A stretch of 64,000 nt of DNA from Takakia lepidozioides (lineage: Eukaryota; Plantae; Bryophyta): the NCBI GenBank assembly GCA_030704615.1, contig CM060732.1, positions 40,486,001 through 40,550,000 of the forward strand, written 5' to 3'. The position numbers and the translations under genes were made by a program. Positions 13,502 through 63,278 of the stretch are shown piece by piece. Below the pieces are notes generated by a model, which saw only the letters and a program-made list of their open reading frames with translations, was not told the origin of the DNA and did not search any database. Numbering within the stretch: position 1 is the first letter of the stretch; each line of letters opens with the position of its first letter.

Positions 13502-15878
13502 ATGGTGCCACGAACAAGTCTAGCAATACGAGCAAAGATTACGACCGTAATGTCTGCAGGAGTAATTCTCCTCTTGTATTCACTTGGCAGAATCGGCAAG
13601 GTGGCAATCGGCACTCCAATTCAAACTGAACATAGAGATGACAATCGAACGCCTGAAGAAAATTGGCCACACAATGCTACTGATAGCATTTTACAGCAGG
13701 CGAATTTGGGAACAATGTGGCCAATGAGGTTGACAGCCAGTACAGTGATTGTTGTCAGCAAGGACGGAACTGGAAACTACACCACAGTCCAGGAGGCCAT
13801 AGATTCCGTGCCGGATGACAATCCTGCTGAAGTAACCATTCAAGTTAATAGACTATGTTAAGGTCATGACTTGGGGAGAATGTCCCTACATCACACACAC
13901 ACACAATCCCCCGGTCTACCAGTTCCAGACTTTCAATATATGTGAATGCGCACTATTAGTATTCTGTATAGTGTCGCACAAATGGGATGATTGAGGGATA
14001 CTGCTGGTGCAGCTATTTGGAAAGCCAAGTCTTGGTTGTCTATAGGACTGTCATGAAGCCGGCCAACATGAGCTATTTTGAAATTTTCAATAGCAACTAA
14101 AGGAGAATTTCTGGCTGATATAAATTCCATGCACCCAGAGAGTGAAGTTCTTCGCTTGAATCTGTTTGCAGGGAAAAGTAACTGTTGCAAGCAACAAGCC
14201 CCACATAACAATCCAGGGAGCTGGGAGAATGGTGACAACAATTTCGAGCAGTTCAGCCGGTAGCACCTTCGCCTCTGCATCCGTGGCTGTTGATGCTGCT
14301 AACTTCACTGCACACGATATGACTTTCAAGGTGAAAGTGTAAGCATTGTACTAGATTCTACCCCTGCTATATCTGAGTGGTAATTCCTGACCTTTATGGT
14401 TTTAGGTTGTGTGGTAAGCAACCGTAAACGACTGATGTCTTTGACCCCGAGCTCTCGTGAATAGGTAGGGTAGAAAGAAGTCAGTCAAATAAATTGTAAG
14501 GGCCCGAATGGTTCCATGTAGATGACAAAGCTGGACAGCCTGTTACAGTGTTCAAGCTTCTAATCCGTTTGCACCGGTCGACGTATTACGTTCAATGACA
14601 TTCAGGACGCAGTGCACACAGTCGCCAATTTGCTTATGAAGATCTTGAAAATATATAGAATTCTTCAATCTTCCAACATTTGCACCTAGTGTTCTGAGTC
14701 CTAGAGAGATGGACAGAATTCAGCCCCAAAGCCACCACCCGGCGCAGAGGGAGAGCAGGCAGTTGCTCTCAGGATTTCTGGGGATATGGCTGCTTTCTAT
14801 AGCTGTGGGTTCCTTGGGGAGTAAGATATCCTGTACGATTTTTCGGGCCGTCACTACTTTAAAGACTGCTACATCGAGGGGGAAATTGACCTCGTCTTTG
14901 GAAATGGACAGTCTTTGTATGAGGTAAGAAATCACAGTTGCTCAAGCTTATCGAACCAACTCGTCTTTCATATATGTGGGCAGCACCTAACCCGATTTCA
15001 ATTCTAAGAACTTCTTTCTGTACACTTCATCTCATGCTGATTACAGAGAAACTTGCTAGGGATTTCGCATTCAAGCTGCCTCAGTCTGTCGATAAAAAGG
15101 CTCCAAAGTTGCATTTGGAACAGGCTGCAACTTCCTCCGGAAAGGTGCATTTGAAGAGATAGGCGATCTGTGAGAGAGACCGATTTTTAAAGGGAAGACC
15201 TTTACAATACATACATCCCACCAATCAGCGTACGATATATGGTCAAAAGCAAACCTTTCCGCATATTGTTGTCGGATCGGGTGGGCCATTTGAACCATGA
15301 AATTGTCAAAGTGCTCAGTAAGGCATGCTAGAGGCGCAGCTTGTAGAGAACATGATCTGCATGTGATCGTGTGAGTTTTCCCAACTTGTTCATGAAATTA
15401 CTGCCAAGGATTCGATGATAAACTCAACTGCTACGACAAGTGGAAGCGTAACAGCTGATGGGCGAACAAACAACACCGAGACCACTGGCTACTCCTTCGT
15501 GGACTGCTCCATAGTGGGGACGTGCTCAATTCTACTAGGAAGGGCATGTCGCCCTTACACACACTCGGTTTATACTTCCTCGTGATCAGCAAAAGTTTCT
15601 TCTCTCGAGTCTACATTGATGCGAGTTAGCGCACAGGACCAGAAAGGATAAACGCTTTAATTCCCTGGAGTATTAGTCACACAGCATTACAATGGCAATA
15701 TTCACAGTATGCTTAGAACTTATGATGGGTTCGACTTTACAGGACTGTGTTCTATGGAGAATACAACAACACAGGACCAGGTGCAAACATGACAGGAAGG
15801 GTCAACTATGCTAAGGCACTCACACAAGCCCAGTCCAAAAGCTTCATCGATGGCTCTGACTGGCTCAAGGAAACATAG
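13502..15878 (+). pseudogene. Pectin methylesterase (CE8, no PRO domain) pseudogene
   Basis: Exon 1 VVSKDGTGNYTTVQEAIDSVP ends in a stop before its donor. Exon 2 is 14172-14330. In exon 3 (14717-14923) the Gln codon of QDTL is TAA (14822-14824). Exon 4 (from 15409) has GRAW>GRAC and a premature stop. Exon 5 (15743-15878) reads TVFYGEYNNTGPGA...FIDGSDWL with an internal deletion. Confidence 0.9.
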
Positions 15879-18599: not shown

Positions 18600-21500
18600 G
18601 TGTGTGAATGGAGGGTGAGGGGTCTAGGTCCGATGCTGGAGCGAGCACGAATGTTGTGGCGGATACAATACAAAAGGACAATGCCGATGGTATAGAAGGC
18701 GCACGAACAAAAGTTTCACATGATACAATAAAGAAGAAGCGTGTCGAGGGTCAGAAAGACGCACATCAGATATTCGGAAGAGATACTTGGCGTAATTAGA
18801 TGTGCAATCTTCTCAATGACGAGATGGACGTCATCGCTGCAGGCCGGATTGAGGCCTCTTTTCTTGAGGAAGTTATTCTCGCTCAACCTTGGGGAGGAAC
18901 ATGTCGGTGTAATTGTTACAGCTGTCTCTGGGTCAGCTTAGGATATGTTAATGACAATTACGAAATGACGGCTTACACATACAAAACTTCGAGACGACTG
19001 CAAACTATCAGAGTTGCTCACTCAGTTTTATGAAGAGAACGAGTCAGACACGGAGGATGACCACCTCAAAGGAGTTAAAAAATCGCAATATAAATGTTTG
19101 AAACGAGTTCGAAGGGGAGATGAGAACTCCAGGGGGAAGAAATAGATGCCTCTCTTAAATTCGGAGTCAATTCAAGCAGTAAGCTTTGTGAGCTCTTGTA
19201 CTCGAAACTGTTGTCAACACTTCAGCTGGGAAAAAACTAGGACTAACCGGAGTAAGTTCTTGGCATCTTCTTTTGATGCAAAGAGAGAGTTAGGGTTTGA
19301 CACCCCCCGACGACTACACCGACTTCCAAATTGTGGTCGTCATGCCTACCTTACAATGGAATGAGTTGAGGTATGTGAGAAGGCGTGGTGGATAATCCAT
19401 GGAATCGGAAAGTCAACGTACTTTGGATACAAGAGGAAGAGTAAGAATGGATTATGTAGTCCATGCATGGGAACAGATGAATGAAGAAACCCCAAGCAAA
19501 AACCCTGCAGACCAAGGCAAATTTGTTATCCCTGATTTCAAGAAACAATGACATTTTGCCTCATAAAATGAGAAGTATCGGAGAAGGAAGGCAAGATGTT
19601 TTGAAGTTGCTACCGGTGGAGACGAATTAGAAGGAGCTAAACAGACAGTCCAATGAGGTACAATACTGCCTTCCAACCCATTCCGGATCTGCCTCTATAA
19701 GTATTTCTATATTTAAGGGAGGGGATGTCACAGGAAACCTCCCGTCATCATTCTGCTACGCGTGCTAATACTCGATATGAAATTGTGAGCATATAAACCG
19801 ACAGTCCATTTATTTTCAATTTCCAAGAGAAGCTAGTCCATCTCTTTACGAACAAATTTTCATTTTCTCTCATAATATTTGTGCATCTATCAAAATTCAT
19901 ATCTCTTGGTTTTAGATATTGGATGTTCGATTTCAATATCAATGTCGATGGGTTATATCTTTTTTATTTTGTACATATAGGTCGCGGGAGGTCTCCCGTC
20001 CTAAATACGATACCAACTCTATACAATTTTTACAATTGGATCAAGCGAACAAACGAATGGGCTTGTCGGCATTGTCGAAGTCTGGAATAAGCCATTTTCG
20101 ATTGATTTTTTTTTGGAAATGTTGAGGTTTTGGAAACATGGTGGAAAATTTGTGAAATGCTCAGATTGTGAGATGTTTCAAGATCTTATCCAGAAGTCAG
20201 TCAGGAGCAGAGAAAGTATTAAAAGAAAATTGAAAGACATCTGATGTATCAAGAGTCATGCCGGAGGCTTTTATCATAATTGGCGGAATGAATCAACGAT
20301 GATGGGCGAGGAGTTTCTGTGTATTATACACGATAAGATGGATCACTCGAAGACTGCCTTACCCCGGCTCCTCGTAACAAACAAGATGGTATCTGGTCTG
20401 GGTCAGCTACTTATGTCCCTAACATGTATGGTGAGTCATGGCCATGGTGACGGTGCTTATGCTCAGTTTACGATCGAGTTCTGGCCAAATGATCCTAACT
20501 TGACAATCAGCTCCTTGGCTTGTTGTCTTCGCGCTCTTGAGAAGCCCACATGTCAAGAGTCAATATAATTTTTTTATCATCCAATGCATCTAATGAGGGG
20601 AAAGTCTCGATGTGACAAAGCACTGAAGCCTAGGGGATCCCAAGGCCCTATTTGTGCCAAGCCATTACCCCGTTGCCTATACTTGCACAACTCTGTAAGA
20701 AAGAACAAAAATCGTTGGATGCTAGCTTTTTTATCACTCTTGACGGCGGGAGGTTTTTTTGAAGCGATCCAGCTTGGATTCTTGATGGTTGGTCACACCC
20801 ACGAAGACATTGATGCATATTTTAGTTAACTGTCGAAGAAGTTGAAACAGACGAACACATATATCATTGCAGATCTCATGCGCCTCTTTATGGAGTCTCA
20901 ACAGCTCTTGTTTATCGCTCAATTCATAGAGGAGGTCGCAGACTTCAAGAAATTTGTGGATGGATATATTGTTGATGGGAGCGATGCGCTAATCGGGATG
21001 ACTGATATGCACATCTTCAAGTTCTATGTAGATTGTGACGGTTGGCCTGTAATGAAGTATAAGAAATCCGCCAACCAACACTGATTGACTTCCGCAGCAA
21101 GGGGCTGTCAAAATGTGGAAGGTTGGTGAGGACGGGAGGTCTCCCCTGCTACCCAAGGGGGTGCCAGGACTTGTTCCACTACAGCCTATTTGGGGAATAA
21201 AGCCCGATGCCAGGGAGAAAAATGTCAAGATTGTAAATGGCCTTTCGAAGTACCGCGAATTCTGGAGACTAGGGATGGATCTCGGCAAGAACTACGAAAA
21301 TACCATGAAGAACTATGATGAGTATTGGAAGGATGTTCTACTTGAACTTAATAAGCCATTGTATGTGCCAAAGGACAAGCTAGAGGAGGGGTTTTTGCCT
21401 TCGACTCGTTAGAAAGATAACCATGACAGAGATGAGATTAGGGTTGAATATCAGAGTGAGGAAGAGTTAGAGGAGGAAGATCGCAACCAGTTGGATCCAT

Positions 21501-22590
21501 ATTGTGGGCCAAAGAGTCAGAGACCTAATAAAGTCCGCTGAACCCATTCAAATATATTGAAATTGGAAACTTCGTACTTGTTCGACCATCAGACATGAAG
21601 ACATATCCAGTTTGGATAGGTGTGGCAATCTCAGATGTTGTTCGTAACTGTTCAGATGAGAGATATCGACAAGTCCTTCTGGAATGGTGGAGACCTAAAG
21701 GTGGTGCAGCGGAGGACGTGAACATGTATAGAAACTATTGGGACAAAGCTTGGGAGTTCAATGAATACGATCCACCAAAGTGGATATAATAAGGATTCAC
21801 AAATGTTTCATTTTTTGAAGATGATGAGGATTTTGTCGGGTCCAAAAACTTTATATCTTCCCTAGCGGAATGTTGTTCACTATTCCGATTTCAACGGTGG
21901 TGCCTTATGACACCGACATTCTAAATTTTATTTTCGCAATTGTGCTATTGATTTCAGTTGTAGCACGGGAGGGTCCACTGCTATGTCTCAACGTCTGTTC
22001 AACATTTACTTACTGGATTCTTATTTGGTATTCGGAGGGTGACAAATAACTATTGTTTTACCGGACAGTTTTAATTTCTGAATGACCAGTTCATGTGAAT
22101 GTTTCTAGATCTTTTTTTTTTAATAAAATTTGACGGCTCGACACTTTTCGTATGGAGCACGAGATATCCCCCCGGTTTGGGGGGGTTCTGAGAGCACCAG
22201 CAATAAGCTGACATTGTACTTGAAATTGTATTTGACATTGTATCTGACTTTGTATTTGACAATTCAGTGCATTTTGTTTGTTACTTCATGTCCTCAATGT
22301 GACAAAGATTTTTCTATCCCTTAAGTTTCAATAATTCAAAAATATTATTTCAATGTTTCTACCAATAATTTTGAGTCACGATCCATTGTGGTTTTAAAGC
22401 TCTTATTTTGTTTCTTATATGATTATTGACATGCATTTGTTAGGTTTTCACGGGAAAGCTCCTCTCATCTTCTCTCCCCTAAACCATCATGTAGTAATCG
22501 AATGATTCGTTTCGCGTAAGTTGCGAGAAACTACCTATCAAGTGCACGGGAGATCTCCTCTCCGTGAATGTACCCACGAGCGATCACCTC
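18600..22590 (+). mobile_element. Decayed DDE DNA transposon (DUF7869/Sola-like transposase)
   Basis: IIHDKMDHSKTALPRL, GHGDGAYA, WPNDPN, PLPRCLYL.NSVRKNKNRW and GFLMVGHTHEDIDAYFS, with stops and frameshifts. A palindromic ACGGGAG.TCTCC motif recurs (19984, 21131, 21963, 22449, 22545). The superfamily label is tentative and the ends are approximate. Confidence 0.75.
22209..22264. repeat. 12-bp tandem repeat (TGACATTGTA-type), about 4-5 copies
   Basis: tgacattgtact tgaaattgtatt tgacattgtatc tgactttgtatt tgacaatt. Confidence 0.8.
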
Positions 22591-22989
22591 AAACTCAAGA
22601 TAGGTGTCTTTCTATTGTCATTTATGTTGCAAAGGACTGTAAGCTTTAATGCATTGTTAATACTGAATATAGTATTATTTTTATATTTATTAATTATTTA
22701 AAATTATTTAGATTTCATCCTCTTGTCCACATTCACTTAAAATTGAGTTGTTAGTTCATAAATAAGTAGCTGATTTAATACAGCATCAATATTGGTTTTG
22801 TACTCTTGCATATAAGCAAACTTCATCTTTATATAAACATATTGTCACTTCTATCTCATCAAAATTCTCAAGTACAGATCAAAATCATATTCCAAATGAG
22901 GATTAACTAACATATAAATTATTTAGGACCCTTCTGGCTATGATAGTGAGGTGATGAGCAAAAGAAAGAAAAGATGACGTGTTCTAAAT

Positions 22990-23639
22990 GAAGCACAAAT
23001 TATGGTGTGTCTTCCCTAAGGGACTATTATTTTCCACTAGAAGGTGGACACTTTGAAAACTGGTCGGTCATCTAGAATTCGGTATGGATCAAATCTCGTC
23101 CTGCCAAGATTGCAGCTTTCCTATGGCAAATAGTTAACAAGGTGCTAAAAGTGCGGGAATGGCTTCAGTTCCAGGCAGCCCTCCTTTGCAACTGTTGTAC
23201 AGCCAATATCATGGAGTCATTGGAGCACTGCCTTCTCCATTGTCATGGCCCTGCCAAGGTCTGGCCTCTGGTCAAGGTATTTTATGCCCACTGGGACAAC
23301 AAAAGCCGTCTATCTCTACATCTTCTCCTTAACTATGATCAGAGATCCAAGACAAGAGCTGTCAACAGCCCGGTTTTTGAGACCCTAAGAAGCTCGACCC
23401 TGTGGCACTCATGGAAAGCCCGTTGCAAGAGATCATTATCAGGGGGAACAACTACCATCTCCTGCCTTCTATCTAATGTGTTCCATGATCTCGGGGTGGA
23501 GTCAAGAAAGGCTTGGTTAAAAACATGTGCAGATATTGGGCGAAATCGGGGAGCACAGCAGCCATCCATGCTAGGTTTCAGAACCCTATATCACTCAGGT
23601 TATGCAGAGGCAAGGCACAAACTCCCAACCATAGCTTAA
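22990..23639 (+). mobile_element. L1-type LINE 3' fragment (zf-RVT/CCHC region)
   Basis: PAKIAAFLWQIVNKVLKVREWL..LCNCC...ESLEHCLLHC...VW...TLWHSWKARCKR. Confidence 0.8.
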
Positions 23640-23687
23640 CTTATCTCAGTGAGACTTGGGTGACCCTTCTAAACTAATGTGATTTAG

Positions 23688-24640
23688 TTTTATTTTATTT
23701 TAAAGGGGAGGTAGCCCTGTGAGAGCTTTATTGAGAATTATTATGGGGAAAAGAATTAAAACCCCAGTTACACCATAAGGCGCACACACCGATTTCGGTG
23801 AAGAGAGAACGTGACCTCTCCCAGAGAGAGACTGATCCAGAATCCAATCCTAACTAGCAACCAACGTAACTAATGGGTTTCCAGGAGATGAGTAAAGGCT
23901 GACTGCGGAAATACAAGAAGAAAGAGTTTACAAAGCATGGAGGCCATCAGGACCTTTGACGAGAGGTGATAGGGATGTTCATGAGGACTTGTAGTGACTT
24001 CATTGCGAAAGCCATATAGCTCCCATTTGGCTTCCCACTTATCTTTTAGGCTTTGGAAGTTAGAGAGAGCTCTGTAGCCTTTCCTGGTGGAGTAGGTAAA
24101 GAAGGGCTCAGGCGTTAAATTTCCAGGACCATTCCATTGGGTCAAGTTCCATCTCTGCCAGTGGATGTCCCAATATCCAGACAAAGGTGTGTCCTGAAAG
24201 CCATTGTTCCAAAGGAGATAAGAGGTCGGGCTGGGGATTAAAAGGCCTGCCTGGGATAGTCCATCCACAGATCCTAACTGGGGTTAGGGAAGTGGCCGGG
24301 ATATGGAGGGGAGAAGTTGAAGTGAGAGCGAGGGTCAAGGAGATGGGGTCAATGTCAAAAGCAAAGGCCTCCAGATGAGATGAAGTGGAATTTGTAACAA
24401 GAGAATTGAGAGACGAGTATGGAGGATTACAAGAGCCCAAAGTGGAAGAGAGGGGTGGTGGACCAGTAGGGCTTGTAACTAGGAAGCTGGCAAGGACTGA
24501 ATGATTTCTTGGTAGCCTTTTGCCAATCGTGTTGAACCCAGAGCTGGAGGCAGGAGCTCCGGTGGCAGCGTGATTCCAGATGTTGTGGATTTGACTGACT
24601 CCCAGACGGTCCCAAGTGGACCACCGTTAAAATTAACATT
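23688..24640 (-). mobile_element. LINE 3' fragment with (TAAAA)n tail, tail-to-tail with the preceding LINE
   Basis: Minus-strand A-rich tail at 23688-23702. The 3' end is shared with 51940-52050. Degenerate ORF pieces such as FFTYSTRKGYRAL...KWEAKW. Confidence 0.65.
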
Positions 24641-25873
24641 GACTAGTTAACTAGCATTAAAGCTTTAAATAAGCCCTAAAAGCCGGGCCAGTTGCTGGCC
24701 GGTTGGTGTTTCCTTGGAATTTTTCTTAAGAAAACAATCTCATAATTATTTACATACATTTGTTGCTAGTATGTATATTTGGGGTCATCCATCGATCCCA
24801 TGGTGTTGCTGTTGGGTTGCTGTTGGGTAACATTTCTTGTAAGTTGAGGGCTCAAAATGAAGGCCACATGTTATTGGTAGTTTTGTCAATCATACATACC
24901 GATGTTAAACACATCCTCGCATATCTAGATGAGACTTGAGATTTTTTCATTAATGTTATGGGTATAATATTGCAATCTTTCAAAGAAAAATTAAAGACCG
25001 ACCTTTTGCCTCAACTTTTTATGTTGTTTTGATTATTTTGTTCGTATAAAGTTTTGCCAACCATACCAGCATAACAGTATAGTCCTTTGTATGTTAGATG
25101 TCACCCTGAACACAATCTCACTATCCAACATACTTGACCCACAAAACTGATGTCCAATTCAACATTATTGTAATCTCTCTGTTAATATTCCTTGCCAAAA
25201 TTGCTGCAGGCTCGAGGTTAAAGGATTGACCCCTACTAAGACCCACATGCCAATGCTGCTTAATACCATTTACTGATTCACTCATTTTTGCATTCATGGG
25301 ACAAGTGACTGTAAATGATTAGACCCAAGTTTTGTGTAAAGTAAAAACCACACATTCAACCGTCCTATTTACAGTGTGTTGGATTATGTTTTGTCTGCAG
25401 ATAGATCAGAAGACGGTGGGTGACTGCAAGATTCTGGGTAAGTACAGAGCGTGGCAAACTGAGATGGGTTTTGTTTTGTGATGAGATATGAGAGAAGAGA
25501 CAGATGAAGATTGGTGTGGGAGATTCGCAAAGATTGTGAAGAGTACAAACTTATGAGAGCCTTTTTGATCAGTAGCTGCACTTGTGTGGCATCATGCAGA
25601 GGCTAATTCCACAATCATGTCTTTAATGCTGTTAGCGGCAGCAAAGGTTGAGATGTGGATAAAACGGGGCTGAGTTTTTGTTCTCAACATCCTAGCGTGG
25701 GACAGCAGTGTCTGCAGAGCACATGCCTCTTCCCCACCACCTCGCTATACTTTGTGTCAGTGTCCTGGGCTTACCACATTGGGGTCTTTGTGTTCTCCCC
25801 GGACCCCAACTCATGTTGTGATCTTGTGCATTTAAAGTGGTGAACTTAAGCCTGGAGATATGGATACTTGCAG

Positions 25874-26963
25874 TGTGCTGTGTAAGTAGCACTTCCCGAC
25901 TGTAGCACCAGAAGAGTTTTTGGTGGATGCAGGTCTGAGAGCCTCATTGATGATTGCTGGAGGTGTGACCCTGATTTGGGGAACAACATTCTGTGCTTGG
26001 CAGACTGTGCTTCTGGGTTTGGGAGGAGTGCTAACAGTGGGCAGATTTACGTGGTCAGCGATAGCTGCGACGATGATGTAGTCGAGTCTGAAGAAGGGGC
26101 GCTGCCTTATGTGGGTCATACAGCACCAACCTCTTTGACGTTGTTGTACTCACGGAAAACATGTTAATGAAGTCCGGAGAAGAGCTGACGATGAACGGTT
26201 CTAAGAGGGTAGATGGACGAGGTGCAAATGCGCACTTTGCCTGTGCACCCCTCACAGAGCAGGCTGCGTCCATCGTTGTTAACCACGGAGCTGACATTCG
26301 TGATTGCAAGTCTATTGGGCCTGCACTCGTCCGAAGGTCGCCCTCGCAATTTGGTGCCGGGGAAGTGACTGACGAAGGCGATACTGAAGCTTCTACTGCT
26401 GTCACCGTCAGGAAGAACAACTGCACTTACCATAATGAGGTGCGTAGTAATGCTCCTTGTCTATTTTCTTGGGGGCCGAGTTTTCTTGATTGTTGTTTCT
26501 TCCTCCAGTTTTCCTGTTGGTCATCTCGTCGTTATAACTAGTTAGTTTCTGTATCCGCTTTTGTTGCATACAAGCACTCTGCAGCATAGAGCATGTCCAT
26601 CATCTGTTTGTCAGCGGTTTCGCAATGGTTAATGATCGTCACACAGTACGTGGGCTTTTCCAAGATGTTTGCGCCGCGCTTTTGATTGCTTGCCAAAGTT
26701 ACCTGGAACATCAACAATGTCGTGCTCTCCATTGTTTTCTTTCTTCTTGTGAGGGATCTCTCTACTTTCGAAGCCTAGAAGCCGATGGTCTATGTGTGCT
26801 TGCTGGCCATTGCAGGTGACCAAGCGTGTAGCAGACGACGAATGTAGCAACATTGGAGGCTGGAGAAGTGGCATCTGGAGAAGCCAAGGTGACATTTTTT
26901 TCAGTGCCCGCTTTCGTCATTCCCTTAGGAGCCCAGTCTAACAGTGCTAAATTCTATACCCAA
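25874..26963 (+). pseudogene. Pectate lyase (PL1) pseudogene, paralogue of 39563-41374
   Basis: [49 protein letters not shown] and VTKRV...GGWRSGIWRSQGDIF. There is a frameshift near 26110, the WVDH segment is deleted and the RMPRCR exon is absent. Splice sites are retained at 25873, 26440 and 26815. Confidence 0.9.
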
Positions 26964-27170
26964 GTGGGTGAATACCGGAACTTTCACTTCGCCTAGAGAG
27001 GCTGGAAGATTTCTCTGAGAACCGAGACTGTTGCTTCGGGCTCCGTCTTTGAGTTTTCACAACTCCCTCGATATGTCAAGTTGCATGAGATGGTTGACTC
27101 AAAGCAGCTTCTTCTCGTCGCATGGACTTCAGAGGTGCTCAACAGCTGTCTTTTTAATGCTGCAGGAAGT

Positions 27171-28392
27171 ATGATCCTGGTGGTGAAGGTCCTCGCGCTG
27201 CTGGCATGTGTTCTGAAAGTTGAAGGCCAGGACTGGTCCGGGACTGGGCACGCAACGTACTACGGTGGAGCCGACGCCTCCGGCACAAATGGTTCGCTCA
27301 GAAAAAAACATCTTGATGTTTGTCCTGCAAATATGCCATGTTTTTTAATCTCTAAGCTTGTCTTTGAAGCTCAGACTACCGCGGAGTTAGTTTCGTACGT
27401 TCGTTCTGCCTCGGGTCCTAGTGGTGGAAGGACCGTCTGCTCTCCAATAGTGGTCACATCAAACTTTTACGGAAACGGTTGACTGACGTTGTTTCTGTTT
27501 GTGTGAACAGATGGTGCATGTGGCTACTCAAACGTGTTCAGTCTTGGCTATGGTACTAACACGGCAGCACTCAGCACCCCACTTTTCAACACTGGCATTA
27601 CTTGCGGTGCTTGCTTTGCGCTGCAGTGTGTGGACTCGCCCGCATGCTACCCGGGTAACCCCACGCTGATAGTCACAGCTACGAATCTTTGTCCCCCAGG
27701 TAGCAACGGTGGCTGGTGTGATCCCCCAAAATACCACTTCGATCTTGCTGAACCTGCATTCGCACGGATTGCTCAAATTCGAGCAGGCTGGTTTCCCTTG
27801 CAGTATCGGAGGTATATGACTACTAGTACTGTTCTCTGTTTCTTTTTTGGTTCATATTTGTTCAATCCAACGTAACTCTTCAATGCTCAATTGCAGTCAT
27901 ACTGTGACTTCCTAAAGCATTCACAGCTGAATAAAACGGAAGAAAGGAAGAAAAACAGAATTTCACCAGCTGGTTGGTGAAGTGATCTGGTGATGGAATC
28001 GTTAGTCACCTCAACCATTTCCTTTCGTGCAAGGTCCCCAAACAGTTGCCATCAGTCCAATCTAACCTCTTTGCCCTTCTTCTTGCAGGGTGAACTGTGT
28101 GAAAACAGGGGGCATCAAATTTACCATGAATGGTCACCAGTTTTTTAATCTGGTGCTGATATGGAATGTTGGAGGCGCTGGTGATGTGATGGCAGTGTCC
28201 ATCAAGGGCTCCAACACAGGCTGGCAGCCCATGCAGAGAAACTGGGGTCAGAATTGGCAAGATGGGGGCAACATGAATGGCCAAAGTCTCTCATTCATGG
28301 TGAAAACCTCAGATGGCAACACTGTCATTGCCAATGACATTGCACCTGCTGATTGGCAGTTTGGGCAAACTTTTGTTGGATCTAACTTCTGA
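27171..28392 (+). CDS. EXPA: Alpha-expansin, 3 exons, 241 aa
   Basis: Exons 27171-27291, 27511-27811 and 28089-28392. Signal peptide, [82 protein letters not shown]. Confidence 0.96.
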
Positions 28393-29454
28393 TTGTGTAT
28401 AGAAGTCTCGTTTTGTTGGTTGTTCAAAAATTGAGTGGGCAACCAGCTGATCATATGTACATTGGATAGGATGCTGTTCATTTAGGCATCATCATCCTCT
28501 GAAGGGAAAAAATGTGGAAGCTGATGGAGGAGAGCTAGTTTTGCAACTGAGGCCTTGGCTTGAGTCAGCCCGTTGCATAAAGTATAGACTTGAGTAATTC
28601 TAACCGGCAGCTGAGTTGTCCCAGCATTTAGGGACCATCGATCTTAGCCTATGTAAGAGCCATAATGGGAGGAACAATTCTCTAAGAGGACCTCTCTAAG
28701 TATGTGTATGATGTGGCAGCTGTTAAAGGGCCACTCAATGTGTTTCTCGTATACAAAGCATTTGTGGAACTACAGCTTGGACTTGCAAGATGTCCATGAT
28801 GTTATATTCTCCTTCCTTTCTTTTGGGTTGCTTGTGGAGGGCCCCTCCCTCTTTCTTGTTTCTTTCTTTCTCTTGTTCCATAAGCTCTTTGAGCTTTCTG
28901 CTGGATGTAGTAAAATACAATCTCATTTCATTTCATTTGTTGCTGTCAGAACAATATGAAAATGTATTATTGGAGGACCACTTTCTTGCAAAGATTCTGG
29001 TCTCTCTTCGGCTTGTCACTGGCTCCCCCTACTCAAGAGTGCAATGAGACAGACCACATCTGCAATCTCAGTCTAATAACAACCTCTCACATGCGATGAG
29101 CAATTTTCACCCTTTTTTCCCAGTTAAAGGGCTTACAATATACGAATCAGTAAAAGGGACTCCTAGCTGTGGAAGTGCTGTTTGAGACAGTTCCAAATGC
29201 TAGAAGTTGGATTGACATAGGCCAGAGTCCTACGTAAAGCTTCATCTCTCATGTTGATGCAAACTTCAAATACTTGAATTGCAGAGACATCAGGGTAACT
29301 ATGTGAGGGGAGGATTTCCTGAAAACTTCCAACCACCAACCAAACAATGTCCCAGTAGTGTAAAGCGCATCCACTATGATACCCACGATAAAGTCTCACT
29401 CTGCGCCCTCCAACGTCCGGGGAGAACCGGCAGCCAGTTACATGCTAGCCGACT

Positions 29455-29551
29455 GAATTCCAGAATTTCCGAATGAAATATGAAACCTCAGGAAATGGAT
29501 CCGAATTCCAGAATTTCCGAATGAAATATGAAACCTCAGGAAATGGATCCG
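29455..29551. repeat. 48-bp tandem duplication
   Basis: GAATTCCAGAATTTCCGAATGAAATATGAAACCTCAGGAAATGGATCC x2. Confidence 0.9.
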
Positions 29552-44894: not shown

Positions 44895-44933
44895 TCGAAG
44901 TACTAAAACCTCTCATTCTCTCTCTCTCTCCTC

Positions 44934-47029: not shown

Positions 47030-48898
47030 AGATACACTTTTGGTAAGAAAATCTTTAGCCATTTCTTCATTGGTACAATTCTAATTTTAACTCTCCACTA
47101 AGTATTTTTTCTCTTATGTAATGGAATTGTATCTCAATATGTTTTGATTTTAGAATGATACTTTGGATTTGCTGTTAATGCGATGGTGCTTTGATTATTG
47201 CACTTAATAATACCGTAGTGCCTTGGCAATTTCGACACAAATTATAATATTTCAAAGATTGTTGAAAATTTTGAAATTAATTTTGTGAAATTAAATAACT
47301 TCGTGAATGATAATACAGCATCTTTGGGAATATTTTATATGTTGAAATGAAATTCTCAAAATAAAATAAATATTCGACAGATGATTGTTGAACTTGCCAA
47401 GGTACTACAGTAGTAGATGTTTGAGGTGCATGTCCCAAATGTGCCATTAACTCCTAAGCCAAATGGCTTCTTTTGCCGCTAAAGTAGAGGCAATATACTC
47501 AACTTCTTTTTTTCTTTTTTCTTTTTAACTCAGCTTCGGTTGTACATAAAGCTGTAGAGGTTTGCCTTTTACTAGCCCAACTTATGGCTCCCCTGCAACT
47601 ATAAAAACATATACAGATGTAGATCTTCTTTCATCCGGGTCTCCTCCCCAATCGGCGTTAGTACAGCTAGAGATCATTAAATCTTTTTTATTTATATCTT
47701 TGATATATTTGATATCCGTTTTAGTAGTATCTTTTAAATAAAAATATATTCTTTTAACTGCTGACCAATGTAGTGTTCCTAGATTTTATTTTATTTTATT
47801 TTATATTGTTTCCTAAAAAGGATACCTGGGAACAACAGCCCACAATTAGATTATTCAAGTGTTGAGAAAGTAACAGCATAGGCTATATCCGACAGTGTAC
47901 TGATAGGACTTTCTTCATTAGAAGAGTACTTATAGGTTTACTGTGTCTCATATTGGCATCTCATAAGAATATCAGTTATATATTTTGATTGACTCAAGTA
48001 AATTGTTGTCGATTCTCTTTCACTATTTACCTCTATTCCAAGTCCATAACTTAATTCAGTCTTCTATGTGATTTGAAATTTAGCTTCTAACTTTCCTTTT
48101 ACTTCAATGATAAATAAATCCTCTACATATAAGAGCTATAATTGGATAACTGTCCCCATCTCTCTTAATATAGACATTACTATCTTCTGTACATTTCTGG
48201 AAATCAATTTCTATTAAATATTAATCTATTTTCATATACCATCTCGAGACGCCTCTTTTAAGCCATAGATATACTTATGCAAATTACATAATAGATGTTC
48301 GTTTCCCTTTGTTAAAAAATTCTTCTAGTTGCTGCATACATAATTCTTCATCAAGATCACAATATAGAAAAGCAGTTTTTACGTTCATTTGTATTATTTC
48401 CGAATTATAATGAGCTGCGAATGCTAGTAGCATCCGAAGTAAAGTCATTTTAACTACGGGAGAGAAAGTATCTTCAAAATCCACTCCAAAAATTTGTGTA
48501 TAACCTTTGGCCACTAGACGCACTTTATAGTGGTCTATAGATCCATCTGATTTAGTTTTAATTCGAAATAACCATTTGCATTCGATTGCATGTCTTTCTT
48601 AAAGTACTTTTTGTACGAATCCATGTTTTATTGGTCATTAAAGAGTGATATTCGTCTTGAATTGCATCCATCCATTTGCCAGCATCGGCTTATCATAGCT
48701 CCTGCAAACATTTTGAGGAGTATCCACACTAGGGATAGCTGCCAAAACCTGTAGATAGTTGAGAGATTGTTGTAACTTCTAAGATGGCTTCCGGACTGTA
48801 GTTCATCATCGAACTCCAGATTGTGTGCTGGTTGGACGACCGGAATCTATTCTTTCGTAGCATTAAAATTGTCATCTTCATCAATAGAGGGATCAACT
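47030..48898 (-). mobile_element. Degenerate Ty1/copia RT-RNaseH fragment
   Basis: RLVAKGYTQIFGVDFEDTFSPVVK, QMNVKTAFL, GAISWASKRQTSTALCTTEAE, NQSTIALTANPKYH. Interrupted by a MITE and a short A-tailed fragment. Confidence 0.9.
47211..47412. mobile_element. MITE family A (TA ends) nested in copia RNaseH
   Basis: TACCGTAGTGCCTTGGCAA ... TTGCCAAGGTACTACAGTA. A second copy lies at 5551-5745. Confidence 0.9.
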
Positions 48899-49027
48899 AA
48901 CTTCACGGAGTAGCTCGTCCGTCTTGAGCTCTGCCTTCATATTGTACACTTGTTGCATACAGACCAAACCTTTCAACTCTTCCCCAAACCTGTCACAGGT
49001 TCAATTCTCTAACCGGAATGTTATAAC

Positions 49028-50054
49028 CAGTGTTGAGTATATGAATTACCTGATATATTACCCTGATATACCCGCCGGGTATATCAGGGTATATTGATAT
49101 ATGTATACCCTGGTGTGGCAAATTTAAGTAACTCGGATGTATACCCTTATATGAGGGTAGATTTTTATGATATACCCTTATCCTTATATTTACCCTGCAT
49201 CAAGACCCTCAATATACTTTCCTGAAGGGTATATGTTAAAATGAAGGGTATATCTAATCAGGGTATATAAGGGCCTTTATGTGCCTTCATAGCCTTTATG
49301 TGCTAGGTCTTTTCTCTTTTTGTTGTGTTGTTAGGGAGCCTTGAGCTATAAGAGTCCAATCACAGCTAAAACAAATGTTACATATATATCATTCTTTAAA
49401 TGTCATATAATCCAAACATATAAAAAGGAAACCTGACAACCCACAATTTAGGTCCTTGAGGGGTTTTTATTTATTTATTTATTTATTTAAGGAAATCTAG
49501 GAGGGACAGCCCACAATTCAGGCCCTTGAGGAGGGGGAAAGATTAACCCCCTTTCATTTATGGGCCATGAGACCTACCGTACGATCAACGCCCATACATA
49601 CTGTCACACAACAATCCCACACACGCAGGGCAGCAGGTTCGAACCCCGAACCACCTAAGTGACACACATTGTGCACTTACCAGCTGAGCTACCAGCCTAT
49701 GCGCTTTTTTTATAATCTCAACAAAATATTATGCAATATCTTATCAATTTTCTCTTTTACCATAGATAGTTTTTTTTTGTGTTTTGTACATATTGAAGAA
49801 CATCATATATTCTTTAAACCATTAAATTATATATTAATGGAAATAACTATCCATACCCGGAAACTATTCATACCCTCAGGGTATATTTTGGCATGTTCAT
49901 CCATACCTGGTGAAAAGTTAATTTACCCATACCCGGAGAGTAAATAAGTTTTTGAGATTTCAATTTATCCATACCCGGAGGGTAAATGATTTGACAAAAA
50001 TAATTTACTCATACCCTAAGGGTATATTGAATTCAATATACCCGCACAACACTG
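49028..50054. mobile_element. Non-autonomous hAT element
   Basis: Termini CAGTGTTG/CAACACTG. Perfect 8-bp TSD GTTATAAC at 49020-49027 and 50055-50062. Many subterminal ATACCC/GGGTAT motifs. Confidence 0.92.
49421..49704 (-). mobile_element. tRNA-derived SINE nested in the hAT element
   Basis: Pol III A box TAGCTCAGCTGG (49691-49680), B box GGTTCGAACC (49636-49645), (TAAA)n tail at ~49464-49490 and a duplicated 3' segment CCTCAAGG.CCT.AATTGTGGG. Confidence 0.85.
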
Positions 50055-50334
50055 GTTATAACCTCATAGTTATCTAGGAAATTTTGACATACTGATTTAG
50101 TACCATCACTAGGACACGTAGGAGCTATTTTTATTATGTTTCTTTATCCTAGATCAGACAATAAATTTTGTCATCTCTTTAAAAATAAATAAATAAAAAT
50201 TGGGGAAAAAATAAAGGTGTATCCGGCACGATTAACTGAAATGAAGTTTGAGATCGAGTCATTCCTCAAGTTCAAACACCTGTCACCCCTCCTATTGTCC
50301 TACCACTTGTTGTTAGTCCTAGTCCACTGACCAG

Positions 50335-51030
50335 AGTTGATCTCTCTATTGATGAAGATGACGACTTTAATGATGAAGATGAAAGAATAGATTCGAGTCC
50401 TCCAACCAGCCCACAATCTGGAGTTCGACGATCAACTAGTGTCCGGAAGCCATCTTACAAGTTACAACAATCTCTCAGTTATGTATAGGTTTTGGCGGCC
50501 ACATCCATAGTGACGATATTCCTCAAACGTTTGCAGGGGCCATGACAAGCCAAGATGTTGACAAATGGATAGATGCAATTCAAGATGAATATAACTCTTT
50601 AATACAAAATTAGCTGAAGGAAGACAATGACATGCAATCAGATGCAAATGATTATTTTGAATTATAACTAAATCAAATGGATCTATAGACCGCTATAAAG
50701 TGCGTCTAGTGGCGGAAGGTTATACACAAATTTCCGGAGTGGATTTTGAAGATACTTTCTCTCCCATAGTTAATTTGAGTTCGCTTCGGATGCTAATAGC
50801 ATTCGCAGCTCATTGTGATTTGGAATAATACAAATGGACATAAAAACCGCTTTTCTACATGGTGATCTTGATGAAGAATTATATGTGCAGCAACAAAGGA
50901 TTTATTATGGAAAAGAACATCTAGTATGTATTTTGCATAAGTCTATCTATGGTTTAAAACAGGTGTCTAGAGCATGGTATACAAACATCGAAAACAGATC
51001 CATATTTAATAGAAACAGATTTCCAGAATT
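50335..51030 (+). mobile_element. Ty1/copia RT fragment, inverted copy of 48190-48898
   Basis: YKVRLVAEGYTQISGVDFEDTFSP, QMDIKTAFLHGDLDEELY, KSIYGLKQVSRAWY. Begins at the same AGTTGATC.CTCTATTGATGAAGATGAC as the left copy. Confidence 0.9.
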
Positions 51031-52440: not shown

Positions 52441-54401
52441 TAATTTTTGAGAGTGAAGAAATTCAAGTTAACACGAAGAGTTACATTGCACAATGTATAA
52501 AGACCTTTGTGACAAAAATACGTACACACAGTTTTTATCTAAGTTTGTTTCCACGCCTCGTCCTAGTATCTTGTCTCTTCTGTCCATCACTGCGGCCAGC
52601 TGTGTGTAGAGCCGTCAGCTATGATCGTTTTGTAGTCGTCTCTACTGCCCACACCCTGACGTGGATCCTTGATCATCTTCTGTTTGATTCGCCAAGCGAC
52701 TTGCTCCTGGAGGAGTATGGCATCCATCGCAGCATCCGTGACTCACAGAATCGGATAGTTCCTCAACAACCCAAGATTGAAGCAACAAGAGCCGATCCCA
52801 CCCGGACCAAGAGGATGATGTGGGAAATGGGGTCAGGACTTGACACGCTTATGGTTGAATACTTCTACAGACGCTGTCTTGATCGGGTACTTCAGAGTGA
52901 GAGTAGCCAGCCATGCCCACATTGCAGGCCAACACTCATATTTGCAAGACTAGGCGGAGGTGGCGCAGGAAGACAATCCGCGCAATCTAAGCATGGTGTT
53001 GAAGGCACACCGCTACCCCAAGCTGCGTGGAGAGCCGTGGACTTGGTGAAGTCCCACTCTCGCGTCGTCCTGGAGCTGGAGACGCAGTTGGCAGTGTGCG
53101 TTTGGCCCCATGCCGCTACGTAGAAGTGTGAAACGAAAGGGAAACAAACAGTTCATGTCTGGCGCTATTCACTGCAAAGCATGCACAAGCGCTACCGGCA
53201 TCCTGATTCACCAATGTCCATCACCAACTACAAGAGATAATTTAGACCCTGATCGGATGCAGCACCTGCATCAACCTTGATATATTCTAGCGAACAATGC
53301 GTCACAACACTTTCAATGTTCAATAGATTTGGACATCTATGGTATAATTCTATAACGATTTGAATCTACACATGATGATTGCCATCTCATGTTCCTCTCA
53401 TGTTTAGGCAAAGAAAGAGAAACTGCTGCTCACTCGCTGTACTCCACCGTCCGCAAGGGAAGCACCCACAGCGCTGCGGCCACCCGTCGATGAATGCCGT
53501 TGGACTCTCCGTTAGTGCTTCCGCATGTCGCGGAAGAGCCGATCGAAGGAGTTGTGGATTTGCTGTTGTCATGGCAGCGCTTGTGAAGATCTCGATGTGA
53601 ATTGGATCTTTGGATGCAACGATCTACCGATCCACTGAAGATGTGAGGTCTTGCACCGCCTCATGAACGAGAGGCAGATTGAATGAGAGAGAGAGAGAGA
53701 GAGAATGTACTCATAAGACGTTCTTTGCCTTAGCCTTGTGGCCATTGACCCCGCGCCCAGTTTGAGCGGAAGAGAGAGAGAGAGAGAGTGAGAGAGAGAT
53801 TTACTCTGGATGAGAAGTGAAATTTGCATGCAAAGAGAAGAAAGTGATGCATGTGTATTGTAAGGTTGCTGTCACGCTTGGATGTTCGCTTTCGGCTTAT
53901 TTTTACTGAAAGACATGATTACCGAGGTCATCAACCCCTGCAATGCATGTGAGGTAGAAGCCTCTTGTAATGTTGTTTGTCTTCCAATGGAATCTGTCTC
54001 TAGAGGACTATTTTGGCGCTTGTATGCAACCTGTTTAGTTGAGCAAGGCCCGGTGATGGCGGATGTCCCACAGCTAATTAGTGTGCCAATGGTGGTAGGT
54101 GACAGACAAAAGGTTTGCTGTGAAATATTGATGTTTCAGCCCCTTCTTGGGGAGAAGAGCTTCATTGGGTTCTGGCACTTGTGATTTGAGGTTATTATGT
54201 AAGGCAGGACAACTCAGATCCTTTGTCCAAACACTGAACAAGAACATTGGAGGAACTTTTTGTATGTATCGGGATGTTTAAGTCTTAAAGGGTGCTGAAT
54301 GGCTTCTGAGTGGCAATGAAAGACACCAACCTGGTGGCTTACACGCAGTGGAACCTTTTTGCTCAGTGCATGTATGGGAGCAGCCTCTTTGACAGCAAGT
54401 A

Positions 54402-57400
54402 CTAATTACCTGAAGCACAGGGAAAACCCACAGAGAGTGAAGTTTGTCGGACCCAAGTGCTGCCATCAATGAAGTCGAGTTGTAGAAATTGTTGAACCTC
54501 CTTGTCACTGAGTTCGTAGGACCACAACACACGCTCCAATCCATTAGCCCCTGGTCCTGTGCAATTGTATTGGGCATAGAAGGAAGTCCTGAAACACATT
54601 CAACACACATCCAGTGCAAAACCATTCACTCACCAGCATTTCAATGGTCTAGTGAATGCAACTTGTACTTTTATGTAATTCCACACCAGGAAATTGAGGT
54701 TTCATCAGCAGCTTGTGCCCTTGGTCACCGCCTAGAAGGTTCTCAACACTAGCACCTACTAGAGGAAGTTGCATTCATAACTTCCTATGACATCATACCA
54801 GGGTACTTTACTAGTAAAGGGATGAATTCCCTTTTGGCTCTCTTTCTCTAGAGTCTGTGTATGCTATATATCTTTCTTACCTCCCTTGAGAGCATATGGG
54901 AAAGGGAATGTTCAACCTGTCATAAATTGAGCTCTCACAGGCATAGATTAAGCAAAACTCTGACAAGGGGATTGGGGGATTTCTCCTGGAGGAGGATTTT
55001 GATGAGTGATCAACTCTGCAAGTACACAATCCTCTCAAAATTAAAACCAAGCCTGAAGGTAAAGAAGGCAATTCATGGAGAAGTCAGATCCTCACGCATG
55101 TACACTGCTGTCTTCGAAATCTGTCCATCCTTCTGGAACAATGATATCGTCCATATATGTTCTTATGAATACAACCCGAGAATATGAGCCCCATGCACGC
55201 CCCAGCCACACCATACCGGTACCTGTGACATTGCAATCCACGAAAACAAATCCAGAATTCTCCTGAGGATCTCCTCTTGCTTGTGCAGTAATTGACCCTG
55301 TTGTTCGTGCTATGACATGAATTTCACATCCCTGTAAGCAACAATCCAATAAGAGAAAATCAAGCGGATTTTCCCATTTTCTCTCTTTTCGAGCCGGATG
55401 GTACTAGGGTTACCAAATAGATTGTAGACATGCATCAAAAATCTAGTCTGAATTGTTACTGAAATTAGGCTTAGGATTGCAGATGAGATGATGTACTTCA
55501 TACACAGACTGTCCGTTGCCAAAAATGAAGTCAATAGAACCCGCAATGAAGCAGTGTTTGAAGTAGTGGCGGCCTGAATAATCAAACAAAGTGTCCTGGG
55601 CACCATAGAATCCGCACTCATAGAAGGCTGCCATATCACCAGATACCAACAATGCCACTGCTTGCTTCCCAGCGGCCCCTGGTTCTGCTGCTGGAGCGGC
55701 ATTCTGGGCAAAAAAAATAGCCTACTGTAACTTCAAATCCGTATGTTTCCTTTCCATTAATATGCAATCCTTAAGCCTTTAGAACTGACCTGACGCTGAT
55801 TCACATACATGTTTTAAAGGGAGAAACTGACAACCCCGCCTCTAGGCTTTTCTTTCCTGCCATCTAATGCAAGGTGCATTGTTCAAGTTCTGTAGAACCG
55901 TTTGAGGCTACGGAATGACTGTAACATAACATCAGAAATGATTTTCTCCTGAGCCATAAAATTCATCCTCTTTTTGCACCTCAACAAATAATCCCTCTGC
56001 ATAAAGGTGTGGTTTTGGAGTGAACTTCAGCCTACCTCAAAGCCCACATTTGATGCAGTGAAGTGGTCAGCATAGATGGAAACAGTGGCACTGCCCTGGG
56101 TTCCACCACTGTCTGCAGCGGTGTCACTGCCAGTTATGATTGTGTTGGACAGACCCGCTCCTTGAAATAAGATGAAAGGCTTGTTGATAGGAATTGTCAC
56201 TTTTTCCCTGCAATTTGTCATCCACAACAGTGCAGTCTGGGGCAAAAAATCCAATTGCTTTGTCAAAATGATTGTACACATGACGAAATGCATACAACAC
56301 TTTGCCAATTTCAGCAGTTACCTAGTGAACCACCCTACTGTTTTCTTGTACTTTGAGGCTGGTTTTTCATGTTGACCCAGATAGCAGAGAACAAAAAGAG
56401 CTTTTCCTCATGTACATTTAAATCCTAAACAACGAAACCACAAGGATATACAACCCAGGAAAATGACAATCCTACAAAGACTCCACCAAATGAGACCCTG
56501 ATCCAAGCCAACCTTCTTGTTCCGAGTTTTGGGAAATGAAGGCAAGATAAAGAGAGCATTCCCGTATTCGTCACTGTAATGCATAACCAGCTTGACACAA
56601 ATTGGACTAATACAGCAAGGATAAACATTCAATCCAGTTTTTTAAAACAGTGGTTGAAGCATAAGTGAACTTCCCTCTCTACACGCAACTAGTGGCTTTC
56701 TCCATCACTAGTGGGCACTGGACGCGATAGAGGAAGAATGCATGCAATTTCTGGCCCCAGGTGGACATGCCAATTGAAAAAGTCGCCCGGCATTATTGGT
56801 TTCAAACCTCGGAGGCTCAGGCTGGAAGTAGGAGACTCCAAGACACCAATCTCAGAACAAAGTGCAGAAGCTCTTTGAATCCAAACCGGCATTGGCTGAT
56901 GGCTACAGTGACCCACTAAAATACGCTGTGCTCATCCTTGAAATTGACTATACTGTTGTCAGGCATCTGAAGGGAGCCTCGAAAGAAACAAACAGATTGA
57001 CCGAGATTGTGCAGGAATCAATCTGAACGCTGTACTGTTTCTGCTCAACCGAAATATCAAAACCTTTCATATCCTCTCTCTCCCCCCTCTTGCTTGCAAT
57101 TCTACTTGTGTCCCTCGGGACCATTGAGCCTCCGCTGACGTAATCACATTCTATCTTTATTTCTTGCTCTCATTCTCTTTGTGGCAGTCACTCACCTGTA
57201 AAATCCAGCATTGATTTGGACGATGAAAGGCTCCTGGTTGTTCTCGGGCACGGAATCAACAGCCGCCTGCACCGATGCAAAGTTTCCTCGACCATTTTTG
57301 TCCACTACAGTCACCTTCTGTGCTAACGAGATGGATGCAGAAACTCTCTGGTCCGTTACTGCGGACTCAGACTCTTGAAAAGAACGGGAGGTGGCGATAG

Positions 57401-61278: not shown

Positions 61279-63278
61279 CTAAACCTCACTAACCCAATCT
61301 TGTCCATTGATAAAGCCTAGAGAGAGGAAGGGCGCTGCCTCAGCGTCTGTGAGTTGATGAGCCCATCGCACCCTCCCATATTCAGTTGCTCCAGGCCCGA
61401 AGCATTGGTACTCTCCATAGTATGTGGTGCTGCAAGTTCACGAGCAAACTGTTAGACTCTAGAGTAGAGTAGCAAGATAACGCACCCTGCAAATTTTCAT
61501 TGCGTAAGCCGAGGACACCCACACAGGAGACATTGCATTGGGCAGAACACTCTTTTTGTTTCTAGACTTCTCGCCACTGATTGTGACATACCTGTCCCTG
61601 GCGGGTATACCCCAGTCGAACCAGCCTTCGGGAACAATAATGTTAGCCATCCACGTGTAGAGAAACACTACTCGGGAGTAAGGTCCCCATGCGCGCCCTA
61701 AAAAGACATTCCCAGACCCCGTTACAGTGCAGCCGACGAAAGAAAACCCACTGTCTTCGGTCGGCAGAAGCCTTTTCTGAGCCGTCAGCGATCCACCTGA
61801 CGTGGGAATCACTCTTAACTCGCAACTCTGCAATACAGTTGAACAAGGAAAGTGTTTTAGTGCGGCATCTTTAAGTACAACCTTGAGGACCATGCATGCT
61901 TCAGGGTATGCAGTCACACAATCTGAGCATGCCGAGAATGAAGACTTCCAAGCAGGCAATCCTAAATGCACAACACGGTCTGTAAGGTATCCAGGTTTCT
62001 CAGATTCCAAGTACAATGAGACCTGAGAATTACCGACTTGGTGTAGGGACGACTACGATGTTTATCACAAGTGGTTACAACTTAGAAATTCAACTTCCAT
62101 CCCGACACAATGTAGCTAGCCTCTCTTGTCCCTCTTAATCTTCCTACAGGTCTCGCCCCATTTTGTACCTTATACATAGAGAGTCCATTGCCGAAGATGA
62201 AATCAATTGAACCTTCAATAAGGCATTCTTTGAAGTAGTGGCGGCCCCTATCATCGTAGAGAGTGTCTTGGGCCCCGTAGAACCCACATCCATAAAAGGC
62301 TGCACAGTCACCTGTGATTCGCACTGCTACAGCCTGCTGTTGGTAAGCCCCAGCTGCTGGAGACGGCGCTGTATTCTGTACACAATCACATTGTAGCAGA
62401 TGGCATTGGCGCTGTTAGCTCTGGAAAACAACTGAGCCAACTTGCCAGAAGTGACAACGATATACAAATACGGAAACGGTCAAACATCTCCCAAAAGCAG
62501 TCTATAGAGAAGTCTATCTTGCAAAATCAATGCTTACCCTGAAGCTAATATTCCTGGCAGTGAAGAACGGGGCGCTTATGCCAACAGTCGAACTTGTGTA
62601 GGTAGTTCCAGTACCCACTGCACTCTCCCCATAAGTAATTGAGGTGACATCGCGACCAGCTCCTTGCAATGTGATGAAAAACTTCGACTTGGGGATAATA
62701 ATTTTCTCCCTGCAGACAGTGTCACTCAAGTTCAATCGCTGCTGTAGACAGCATTGACGCAGAGGAAATTACACTCCCCAAAAGATCCGTGTACTATCGA
62801 TAAGAGATCGGCTAGGACTCAACTACGTCACCTGAAACACATTAGGCCCTCTCCCTCTTGAACACGCAACCACAAAAATGAAAGATGCTTCCCGCTAGAT
62901 GAGGAGGTCTTACACGTAGGTGCCCGCATGCACTTGGATAGTAACTCGCTGTTTGTTGTGCAATGGCACTGCGTTCAGAGCATCCGTCACGGTCCTGTAG
63001 TCCCCAGCACCGCCTTGGTCCACTACGATTACTCTTGCAGCACCATCAAGTTTACTACGTTTTAAAGCGGGAGATTTCTGATCAGGCTTCTCCGGAGAGC
63101 TCACGAGGGCAGCATGCTTGGCACCGACTTTAGCTACCCAGCTCTTAAAATCGGATTGTGAGCTGGAGACCTCGCCCTTACCATCTGACTCTTTTGACTC
63201 GACGAAGTGCGACGACAGAAATACAAGGCAAAGTCCAATGAGAACAGCAAGCATATGAGAGTTCCACATACTCCCCAT
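61279..63278 (-). CDS. Pectin methylesterase (CE8, no PRO domain; F..WV..VG N-terminal motif as in the PME53/PME68-type clade), 5 exons, 376 aa
   Basis: Exons 63278-62914, 62709-62538, 62375-62169, 61827-61592 and 61429-61279 sum to 1131 nt. Signal peptide, [66 protein letters not shown]. Confidence 0.95.

Follow-up and report, generated by a model that had tools for sequence, protein, structure and literature searches.

A neighbourhood of pectin methylesterase, pectate lyase and alpha-expansin genes with decayed copies in a transposon-rich region of the moss Takakia lepidozioides

Is a run of neighbouring genes from unrelated families, all apparently concerned with loosening the plant cell wall, a unit that is regulated and kept as such, or the outcome of duplication and decay in one part of a chromosome? 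The question is raised by a stretch of 64,000 nucleotides from the moss Takakia lepidozioides (GenBank assembly GCA_030704615.1, contig CM060732.1, positions 40,486,001 to 40,550,000, forward strand), hereafter called the window, in which genes for pectin methylesterases (PMEs), a pectate lyase (PL) and an alpha-expansin (EXPA) occupy the interval from 13.5 to 63.3 kb. The analysis confirmed a genuine non-homologous neighbourhood of wall-loosening genes, accompanied by three decayed copies. With somewhat better than even confidence, it is considered to be an apparently lineage-restricted neighbourhood that arose as genes of a transposon-rich region were duplicated locally, decayed or were rearranged, and its intact members to be ordinary wall enzymes that are individually transcribed.

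The window is intron-bearing eukaryotic plant DNA with a G+C content of 36-49%. Five intact genes lie within ~50 kb and belong by Pfam to three unrelated families, namely Pectinesterase (PF01095) with three genes (PME-B, PME-C and PME-D), Pectate_lyase_4 (PF00544) with one PL1 pectate lyase, and one alpha-expansin with the domains DPBB_1 and Expansin_C. Three further units are dead, namely PME-A, a PL relic and a fragmentary copy of the PME-C locus. A tblastn search with exon peptides from the window as queries placed the PME family at four positions, the PL family at two and the expansin at one. Exon borders were set from reading frames, alignment of paralogues, GT..AG sites and RNA joints where present, and the gene models were verified exon by exon; all five intact models have GT..AG introns, zero internal stops and a length divisible by three. 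EXPA, PME-B and the PL gene are on the forward strand and PME-C and PME-D on the reverse strand, and each of the five products has a hydrophobic N-terminus, judged by eye to be a signal peptide. As in plant 'operon-like' clusters, three non-homologous families are physically contiguous in 50 kb. The first-pass annotation, made from the sequence alone, had listed eight units here (five CE8 PMEs, two PL1 lyases and one EXPA), and all eight were found in place by Pfam, tblastn and blastn.

Each of the intact PMEs has five exons. PME-B (390 aa) has coding exons at 32591-32991, 33318-33486, 33677-33883, 34141-34385 and 34623-34773 on the forward strand, and its transcript starts at or before 32243. 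On the reverse strand, PME-C (356 aa) has exons at 57464-57196, 56207-56036, 55703-55497, 55331-55096 and 54588-54402, and PME-D (376 aa) at 63278-62914, 62709-62538, 62375-62169, 61827-61592 and 61429-61279. The intron positions and phases of the three genes are identical. Domain PF01095 was detected on exons of these genes and of PME-A, with matches to the PDB entries 5c1c, 1gq8 and 1xg2. The catalytic residues of CE8 enzymes, as in the carrot PME (1gq8), are two Gln, two Asp and one Arg, which lie in the motifs QAVA, QDT, DFIFG and LGRAW. All four motifs are present in PME-B, PME-C and PME-D, and in the alignment of PME-B exon 3 with the solved PMEs 5c1c and 1gq8, QAVA, QDTL and DFIFG are kept. 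The PMEI pro-region gave no match in the exon 1 open reading frame (ORF) of PME-A by Pfam, nor was it apparent on reading exon 1 of PME-B, PME-C and PME-D, whose products are 356-390 aa long.

PME-A, by the same motifs, is a dead CE8 gene. Five exon relics were located with paralogue exons by tblastn at 13469 to ~15870 on the forward strand; exon 3 has an in-frame stop in place of the Gln of the catalytic QDT motif, DFIFG has become DLVFG and LGRAW has become LGRAC, and exon 4 is degenerate and holds a stop. The fifth PME proposed by the first-pass annotation was borne out as a DNA-level duplicate of the PME-C locus at 42.9-44.9 kb (42901-44894, reverse strand), with no protein-level trace even at E<20. 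It consists of collinear blastn pieces (direct repeats D3, D4, D7 and D8) that match 53421-56040 with 72-97% identity, the larger ones with 80-93%. This duplicate keeps the 3′ flank, intron 4 and parts of exon 5 and intron 2; of exon 4 it has the end and of exon 2 the edge, and exon 3 and the greater part of exon 4 have been lost by deletion. A transposon within intron 4 of PME-C was also considered and rejected, the shared repeat being this same duplicate.

In a tree built on exon 3, PME-B groups with its own orthologues (support 100/96), apart from PME-A, PME-C and PME-D. PME-C and PME-D have closer relatives outside the window, in a short alignment with weak support outside the PME-B group. 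Since the tree separates PME-B from the others, the PMEs are regarded as old paralogues and not as the product of a recent burst; the PME-C fragment is a younger local duplicate. PME-C and PME-D sit in tandem on one strand, as in tandem PME arrays. Such arrays, however, account for the homologous part of the neighbourhood only and not for its PL and EXPA members.

The intact PL1 pectate lyase-like gene (435 aa) has four exons on the forward strand at 39563-39753, 39918-40560, 40764-41006 and 41144-41374, the junction between exons 1 and 2 being a predicted one. PF00544 was found on exons 2 and 3, and the product matches the solved Jun a 1 (1pxz) with an E-value of 6e-63. It is 74-79% identical to moss PLs, including 'pectate lyase 5' of Physcomitrium patens and proteins from Sphagnum. 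DGDGI and DGLVD, which would supply the Ca2+-binding Asp residues, align with Jun a 1, and RMPRCR in exon 3 would correspond to the catalytic Arg motif R.P..R. A dead PL1 relic lies directly upstream of EXPA on the forward strand (~25870-26966). It is 41-57% identical by tblastn to PL exons 2 and 4, and has a frameshift and several stops, and no homologue of exon 3 was detectable in it by tblastn. The relic scores alike against other moss PLs and against the PL of the window. Duplication of a PME-PL pair as a unit (PME-A with the PL relic, PME-B with the PL gene) is unsupported, as PME-A is on a long branch and does not pair with PME-B, and as the relic shows no greater similarity to the PL of the window than to those of other mosses.

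EXPA (241 aa) has three coding exons on the forward strand (27171-27291, 27511-27811 and 28089-28392), with the 3′ end of its mRNA at ~28682. The domains DPBB_1 (3.7e-18) and Expansin_C (7.6e-29) were identified, the GACGY and HFDL motifs are readable, and the protein has the two-domain structure of an alpha-expansin, with ~70% identity to the EXPAs of seed plants.

Two small RNA runs of the species (X1 and X2, tissues unspecified) were available as assembled contigs and were compared over one 6-kb stretch spanning EXPA and PME-B. In X1 the two genes are found on separate spliced contigs. That of EXPA is 1726 nt long, is spliced from 27809/11 to 28087/89 and ends at 28682, and that of PME-B is 1920 nt long, starts at 32243 and has the splice joint 32991 to 33318. 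EXPA and PME-B are real, spliced and separately assembled genes. One gene with one transcript is what is seen for these two, and the same would be expected of PL, PME-C and PME-D. The ~3.5 kb between the two contigs has no gene-derived contig. The only extra transcript in the 6-kb stretch comes from a repeat at 29407-30267, present in contigs of both runs, mostly with 95-99% identity and small indels; this is a multi-copy transcribed element and not a unique gene.

As 896 nt of the EXPA contig are accounted for downstream of 27510, ~830 nt lie upstream of it, and the mRNA therefore starts near 26.46 kb, inside the dead PL relic, with a 5′ leader of ~700 nt, unless it is spliced further. One of two matches to the root-hair element consensus lies at 26719-26735 on the reverse strand, ~450 bases upstream of the EXPA start codon, and is within chance expectation for the window. 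Scans of the window for this element gave 0 and 2 matches against ~1 expected, with no enrichment.

Of a plant 'operon-like' functional cluster, linkage kept in related species would be expected, and homologous loci were examined in this regard. In all 105 loci were fetched, 30 through protein look-ups and 75 through a metagenome scan with PME-B exon 3, with flanks of up to 10 kb per side. The protein searches were run per exon, with candidates of 0.55-1.75 times the query length; they returned no match above 83% identity, and one 2.2-kb metagenome contig reached 90% in the PME-B exon 3 locus scan. In the window, the PL gene starts 4.8 kb after PME-B and EXPA ends 4.2 kb before it, so a conserved spacing would be detectable in flanks of this length. 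None of the 30 protein-look-up loci has a second of the three families within ~10 kb. Only the PL family is present at the two PL loci of P. patens (L015, L016) and on moss-like metagenome contigs (L002, L007, L009 and L017/18), and the neighbours of the PL gene of Sphagnum compactum (L008) are a FAB1-like kinase gene and a gene of no assigned family. Likewise, only the PME family was found at loci with PME-B-like genes of 73-80% identity (L020, L023-25), and among the loci of the closest EXPA genes (L026-29, 74-77% identity) one has a chlorophyll a/b-binding gene beside it (L028). The closest loci with useful flanks in the exon 3 scan (L032-L035, 79-81% identity) are without PL or EXPA.

A PME-D-like tandem pair was found on a Logan contig of another organism (L030:3767-13246), where two genes of the PME-C/D type lie 7 kb apart on one strand with TFIIA-gamma between them. 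From this arrangement, the PME tandem pair may be older than the species. Two of the 75 scan loci do carry a second family, PME with PL, as contiguous exon matches of 31-60% identity, the genes lying a few kb apart at L070:6510-15702 (two PMEs) and L088:5358-10177. These loci look intronless and are most likely microbial pectin-utilisation loci, in which PME adjoins pectate lyase. Microbial genes of this kind are prokaryote-type, intronless and often part of true operons. The genes of the window, unlike these, are plant-type and spliced and are closest to moss and seed-plant homologues. No plant-like locus with two families was present among the 105 (flanks up to 10 kb, orthology by single exons). 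Linkage of PME, PL and EXPA in relatives had been named beforehand as something the proposed module would stand or fall by, and it was absent at every plant-like locus examined.

On the reading favoured here, repeated local duplication and decay within a transposon-rich stretch devoid of other genes would have given rise to the neighbourhood. The three PMEs, putatively secreted like the other products, would remove methyl esters from homogalacturonan, and the de-esterified chain would be the substrate of the PL1 enzyme, which would cut it by Ca2+-dependent beta-elimination; the alpha-expansin would act without hydrolysis, by loosening the network of cellulose and matrix. Selective coupling of the genes is probably lacking, and adjacency of the three families may not be required for their regulation. 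In Arabidopsis, the root-hair-specific genes RHS12 (pectinesterase) and RHS14 (pectate lyase) are at separate loci, and the EXPA7 promoter drives root-hair expression (PMC4948871). A tip-growing cell there makes joint use of all three families, from dispersed genes co-regulated in trans, whereas the moss genes are clustered; since RHS12 and RHS14 are co-regulated from dispersed loci, joint use is possible without clustering.

Several points weigh against this reading. Pfam gave no convincing non-transposon match for the other ORFs of the window, of which the 150 longest (at least 74 aa) were scanned, although genes of short exons could escape such a scan. Strong matches among these ORFs were to DUF7869, RVT_2 and zf-RVT, and of three marginal ones (E 0.004-0.009) at least two fall on a C2H2-like ORF at 4336-4659, outside the cluster. 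The earlier proposal that only transposable elements and decayed sequence separate the units is in keeping with this, and the contiguous, non-homologous set of secreted wall-enzyme genes with no recognisable unrelated gene between them, as it had been described, stands structurally.

The exact composition is also improbable by chance. Family sizes were borrowed from Physcomitrium, for which 14 PMEs, or 35 by domain search, and 7 PLLs are reported (PMC4108027), and an EXPA family of 27-35 was assumed. With random gene order, a run of PME, PL and EXPA within 5-8 consecutive genes somewhere in the genome has a probability of 1.5e-4 to 2.4e-3. A broad null, in which any three of 15 wall families fall among 150-400 genes, gives 2-71%; the grouping as 'wall gene' was defined post hoc and ~5000 windows had been read. 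The true chance probability lies between the strict and the broad figures. Chance adjacency is improbable for the exact trio and unremarkable under the broad post hoc definition.

Furthermore, X1 contains both EXPA and PME-B and X2 neither of them, as co-regulation predicts (n = 2 samples), X2 having only repeat over the 6-kb stretch; this joint on/off pattern is weak support for co-regulation. On the side of the favoured reading, no 7-10-mers common to the five upstream regions rose above the background of other window segments. This negative is weak and compatible with a chromatin mechanism, since the co-expressed physical clusters of Arabidopsis likewise have little promoter-motif similarity and no common motifs (PMC5389543). 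Finally, the reach of the synteny comparison is that of flanks up to 10 kb, orthology from single exons and contigs mostly of metagenome mosses of unspecified source.

These points would fit a selected and co-regulated cluster, in which a chromatin domain would turn on the PME, PL and expansin genes jointly, in a single cell type or at one stage. Candidate settings are protonema or rhizoids with tip growth, the separation of cells, dehiscence, and the release of spores or gametes. Such a cluster is possible, if rather unlikely. It would account for the fact that five out of five intact genes in 50 kb come from complementary wall-loosening families with nothing else recognisable between them, for the low chance probability of the exact trio, and for the joint presence and absence of EXPA and PME-B. 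It also has a precedent in 17 stamen clusters of Arabidopsis, in which there is little homology among the genes or similarity among their promoters; pectin-modifying enzymes are included in three of them (PMC5389543). Set against it are the lack of linkage at all of the relatives' loci examined, the decay of three of the eight units, an expression basis of two samples of unspecified tissue, and the post hoc definition of 'functionally related', for which the broad null applies.

The Arabidopsis clusters are also the nearest described kind, of which the present locus is a possible member. Reimegard et al. (2017) reported co-expressed physical clusters in stamen and pollen development, with pectin-modifying enzymes in clusters #8, #10 and #17 (PMC5389543). 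Like the Takakia locus, these are short runs of neighbouring monocistronic genes for secreted wall or pectin proteins with little promoter similarity, and regulation at the chromatin level has been proposed for them (PMC5389543). They differ in that they were defined by measured co-expression and chromatin experiments, where co-expression here means two genes in two runs. Clusters for plant specialised metabolism resemble the locus in that three or more genes of unrelated families, whose biochemical roles complement one another, stand side by side. In those, however, a pathway runs through intermediates inside one cell, and here the products act on an extracellular polymer; compared with them, co-regulation and selection against breakage would be at most putative for this locus.

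No description of a moss locus that combines PME, PL1 and alpha-expansin genes with three pseudogenes was found in the literature searched. To our knowledge, functional gene clusters have so far been documented mainly for specialised metabolism and for the stamen genes of Arabidopsis. There is some chance, though not a high one, that the locus is a selected, chromatin-regulated 'wall-disassembly cassette', bringing together in one cell type an expansin and two pectin enzymes, one that de-esterifies and one that cleaves the backbone. It would then be the first functional cluster of non-homologous genes outside metabolism to be described for wall remodelling in bryophytes. Co-regulation of the five genes would extend the functional-cluster idea to wall remodelling in an early-diverging land plant, and, mosses being amenable to targeted deletion, a single 50-kb deletion would then offer a handle on pectin disassembly. 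If the genes are not co-regulated, the locus is a plain case of large wall-enzyme families undergoing birth-and-death evolution where transposons abound, and a warning that neighbouring genes are easily grouped by function after the fact.

A strict operon, in which neighbours share transcripts, for example by read-through from a pectate lyase promoter into the expansin gene, is very unlikely. The one observation in its favour is the reach of the EXPA contig into the PL relic, which holds if there is no further splicing; the upstream PL is dead, though, and a Logan contig is no proof of a single molecule. A true operon has a single transcript over several genes, and what was found is EXPA and PME-B on different contigs with ~3.5 kb uncovered between them, and members on both strands. 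The 'operon-like module' of the first-pass annotation is unsupported for these reasons, that is, the separate contigs, the uncovered stretch and the position of PME-C and PME-D on the opposite strand, and also for want of linkage in the relatives' loci and of promoter k-mers in common. A false join or collapse of unlinked wall genes in the assembly is the least probable explanation of all, as nothing was found to support it beyond the region being repeat-rich, as independent RNA contigs match EXPA and PME-B, each differing by one base and spliced where predicted, and as the local duplicates show the divergence (72-97% identity) and collinearity to be expected of real old duplications.

To the left of the cluster, a U6 spliceosomal small nuclear RNA gene is present at 5455-5540 on the reverse strand (Rfam RF00026, 47.2 bits, E 1e-08); it is the sole match in an Rfam scan of the window. 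An ORF at 9567-9809 on the reverse strand has a weak match to the heme-binding split-barrel proteins AT3G03890 of Arabidopsis and HOZ1 of poplar (PDB 6m09, E 0.005). This ORF is probably one exon of a gene unrelated to the cluster, whose left border it would mark. The presence of this exon and of the U6 gene suggests that the cluster ends before 13 kb. On the right, 722 bases lie between the start codon of PME-D and the end of the window, and the cluster may go on past that edge.

Transposon remains lie between PME-A and the PL relic (19797-24626), where Pfam detected pieces of a DUF7869 transposase at 20.2-21.1 kb and a zf-RVT ORF at ~23.1-23.6 kb. A second transposon block, identified by Pfam and repeat finding, separates the PME-C fragment from PME-C (44885-50825). 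Its ORFs at 44.9-46.0 kb are retroelement-like by eye only, with no Pfam match, and pieces of a Copia RVT_2 domain are present at 48.3-48.6 kb. At 48398-50825 these reverse-transcriptase remains lie between inverted arms of 200 nt (48398-48597 and 50626-50825) and 119 nt with 88-89% complementarity, and the structure resembles a retroelement that was partly duplicated in inverted orientation.

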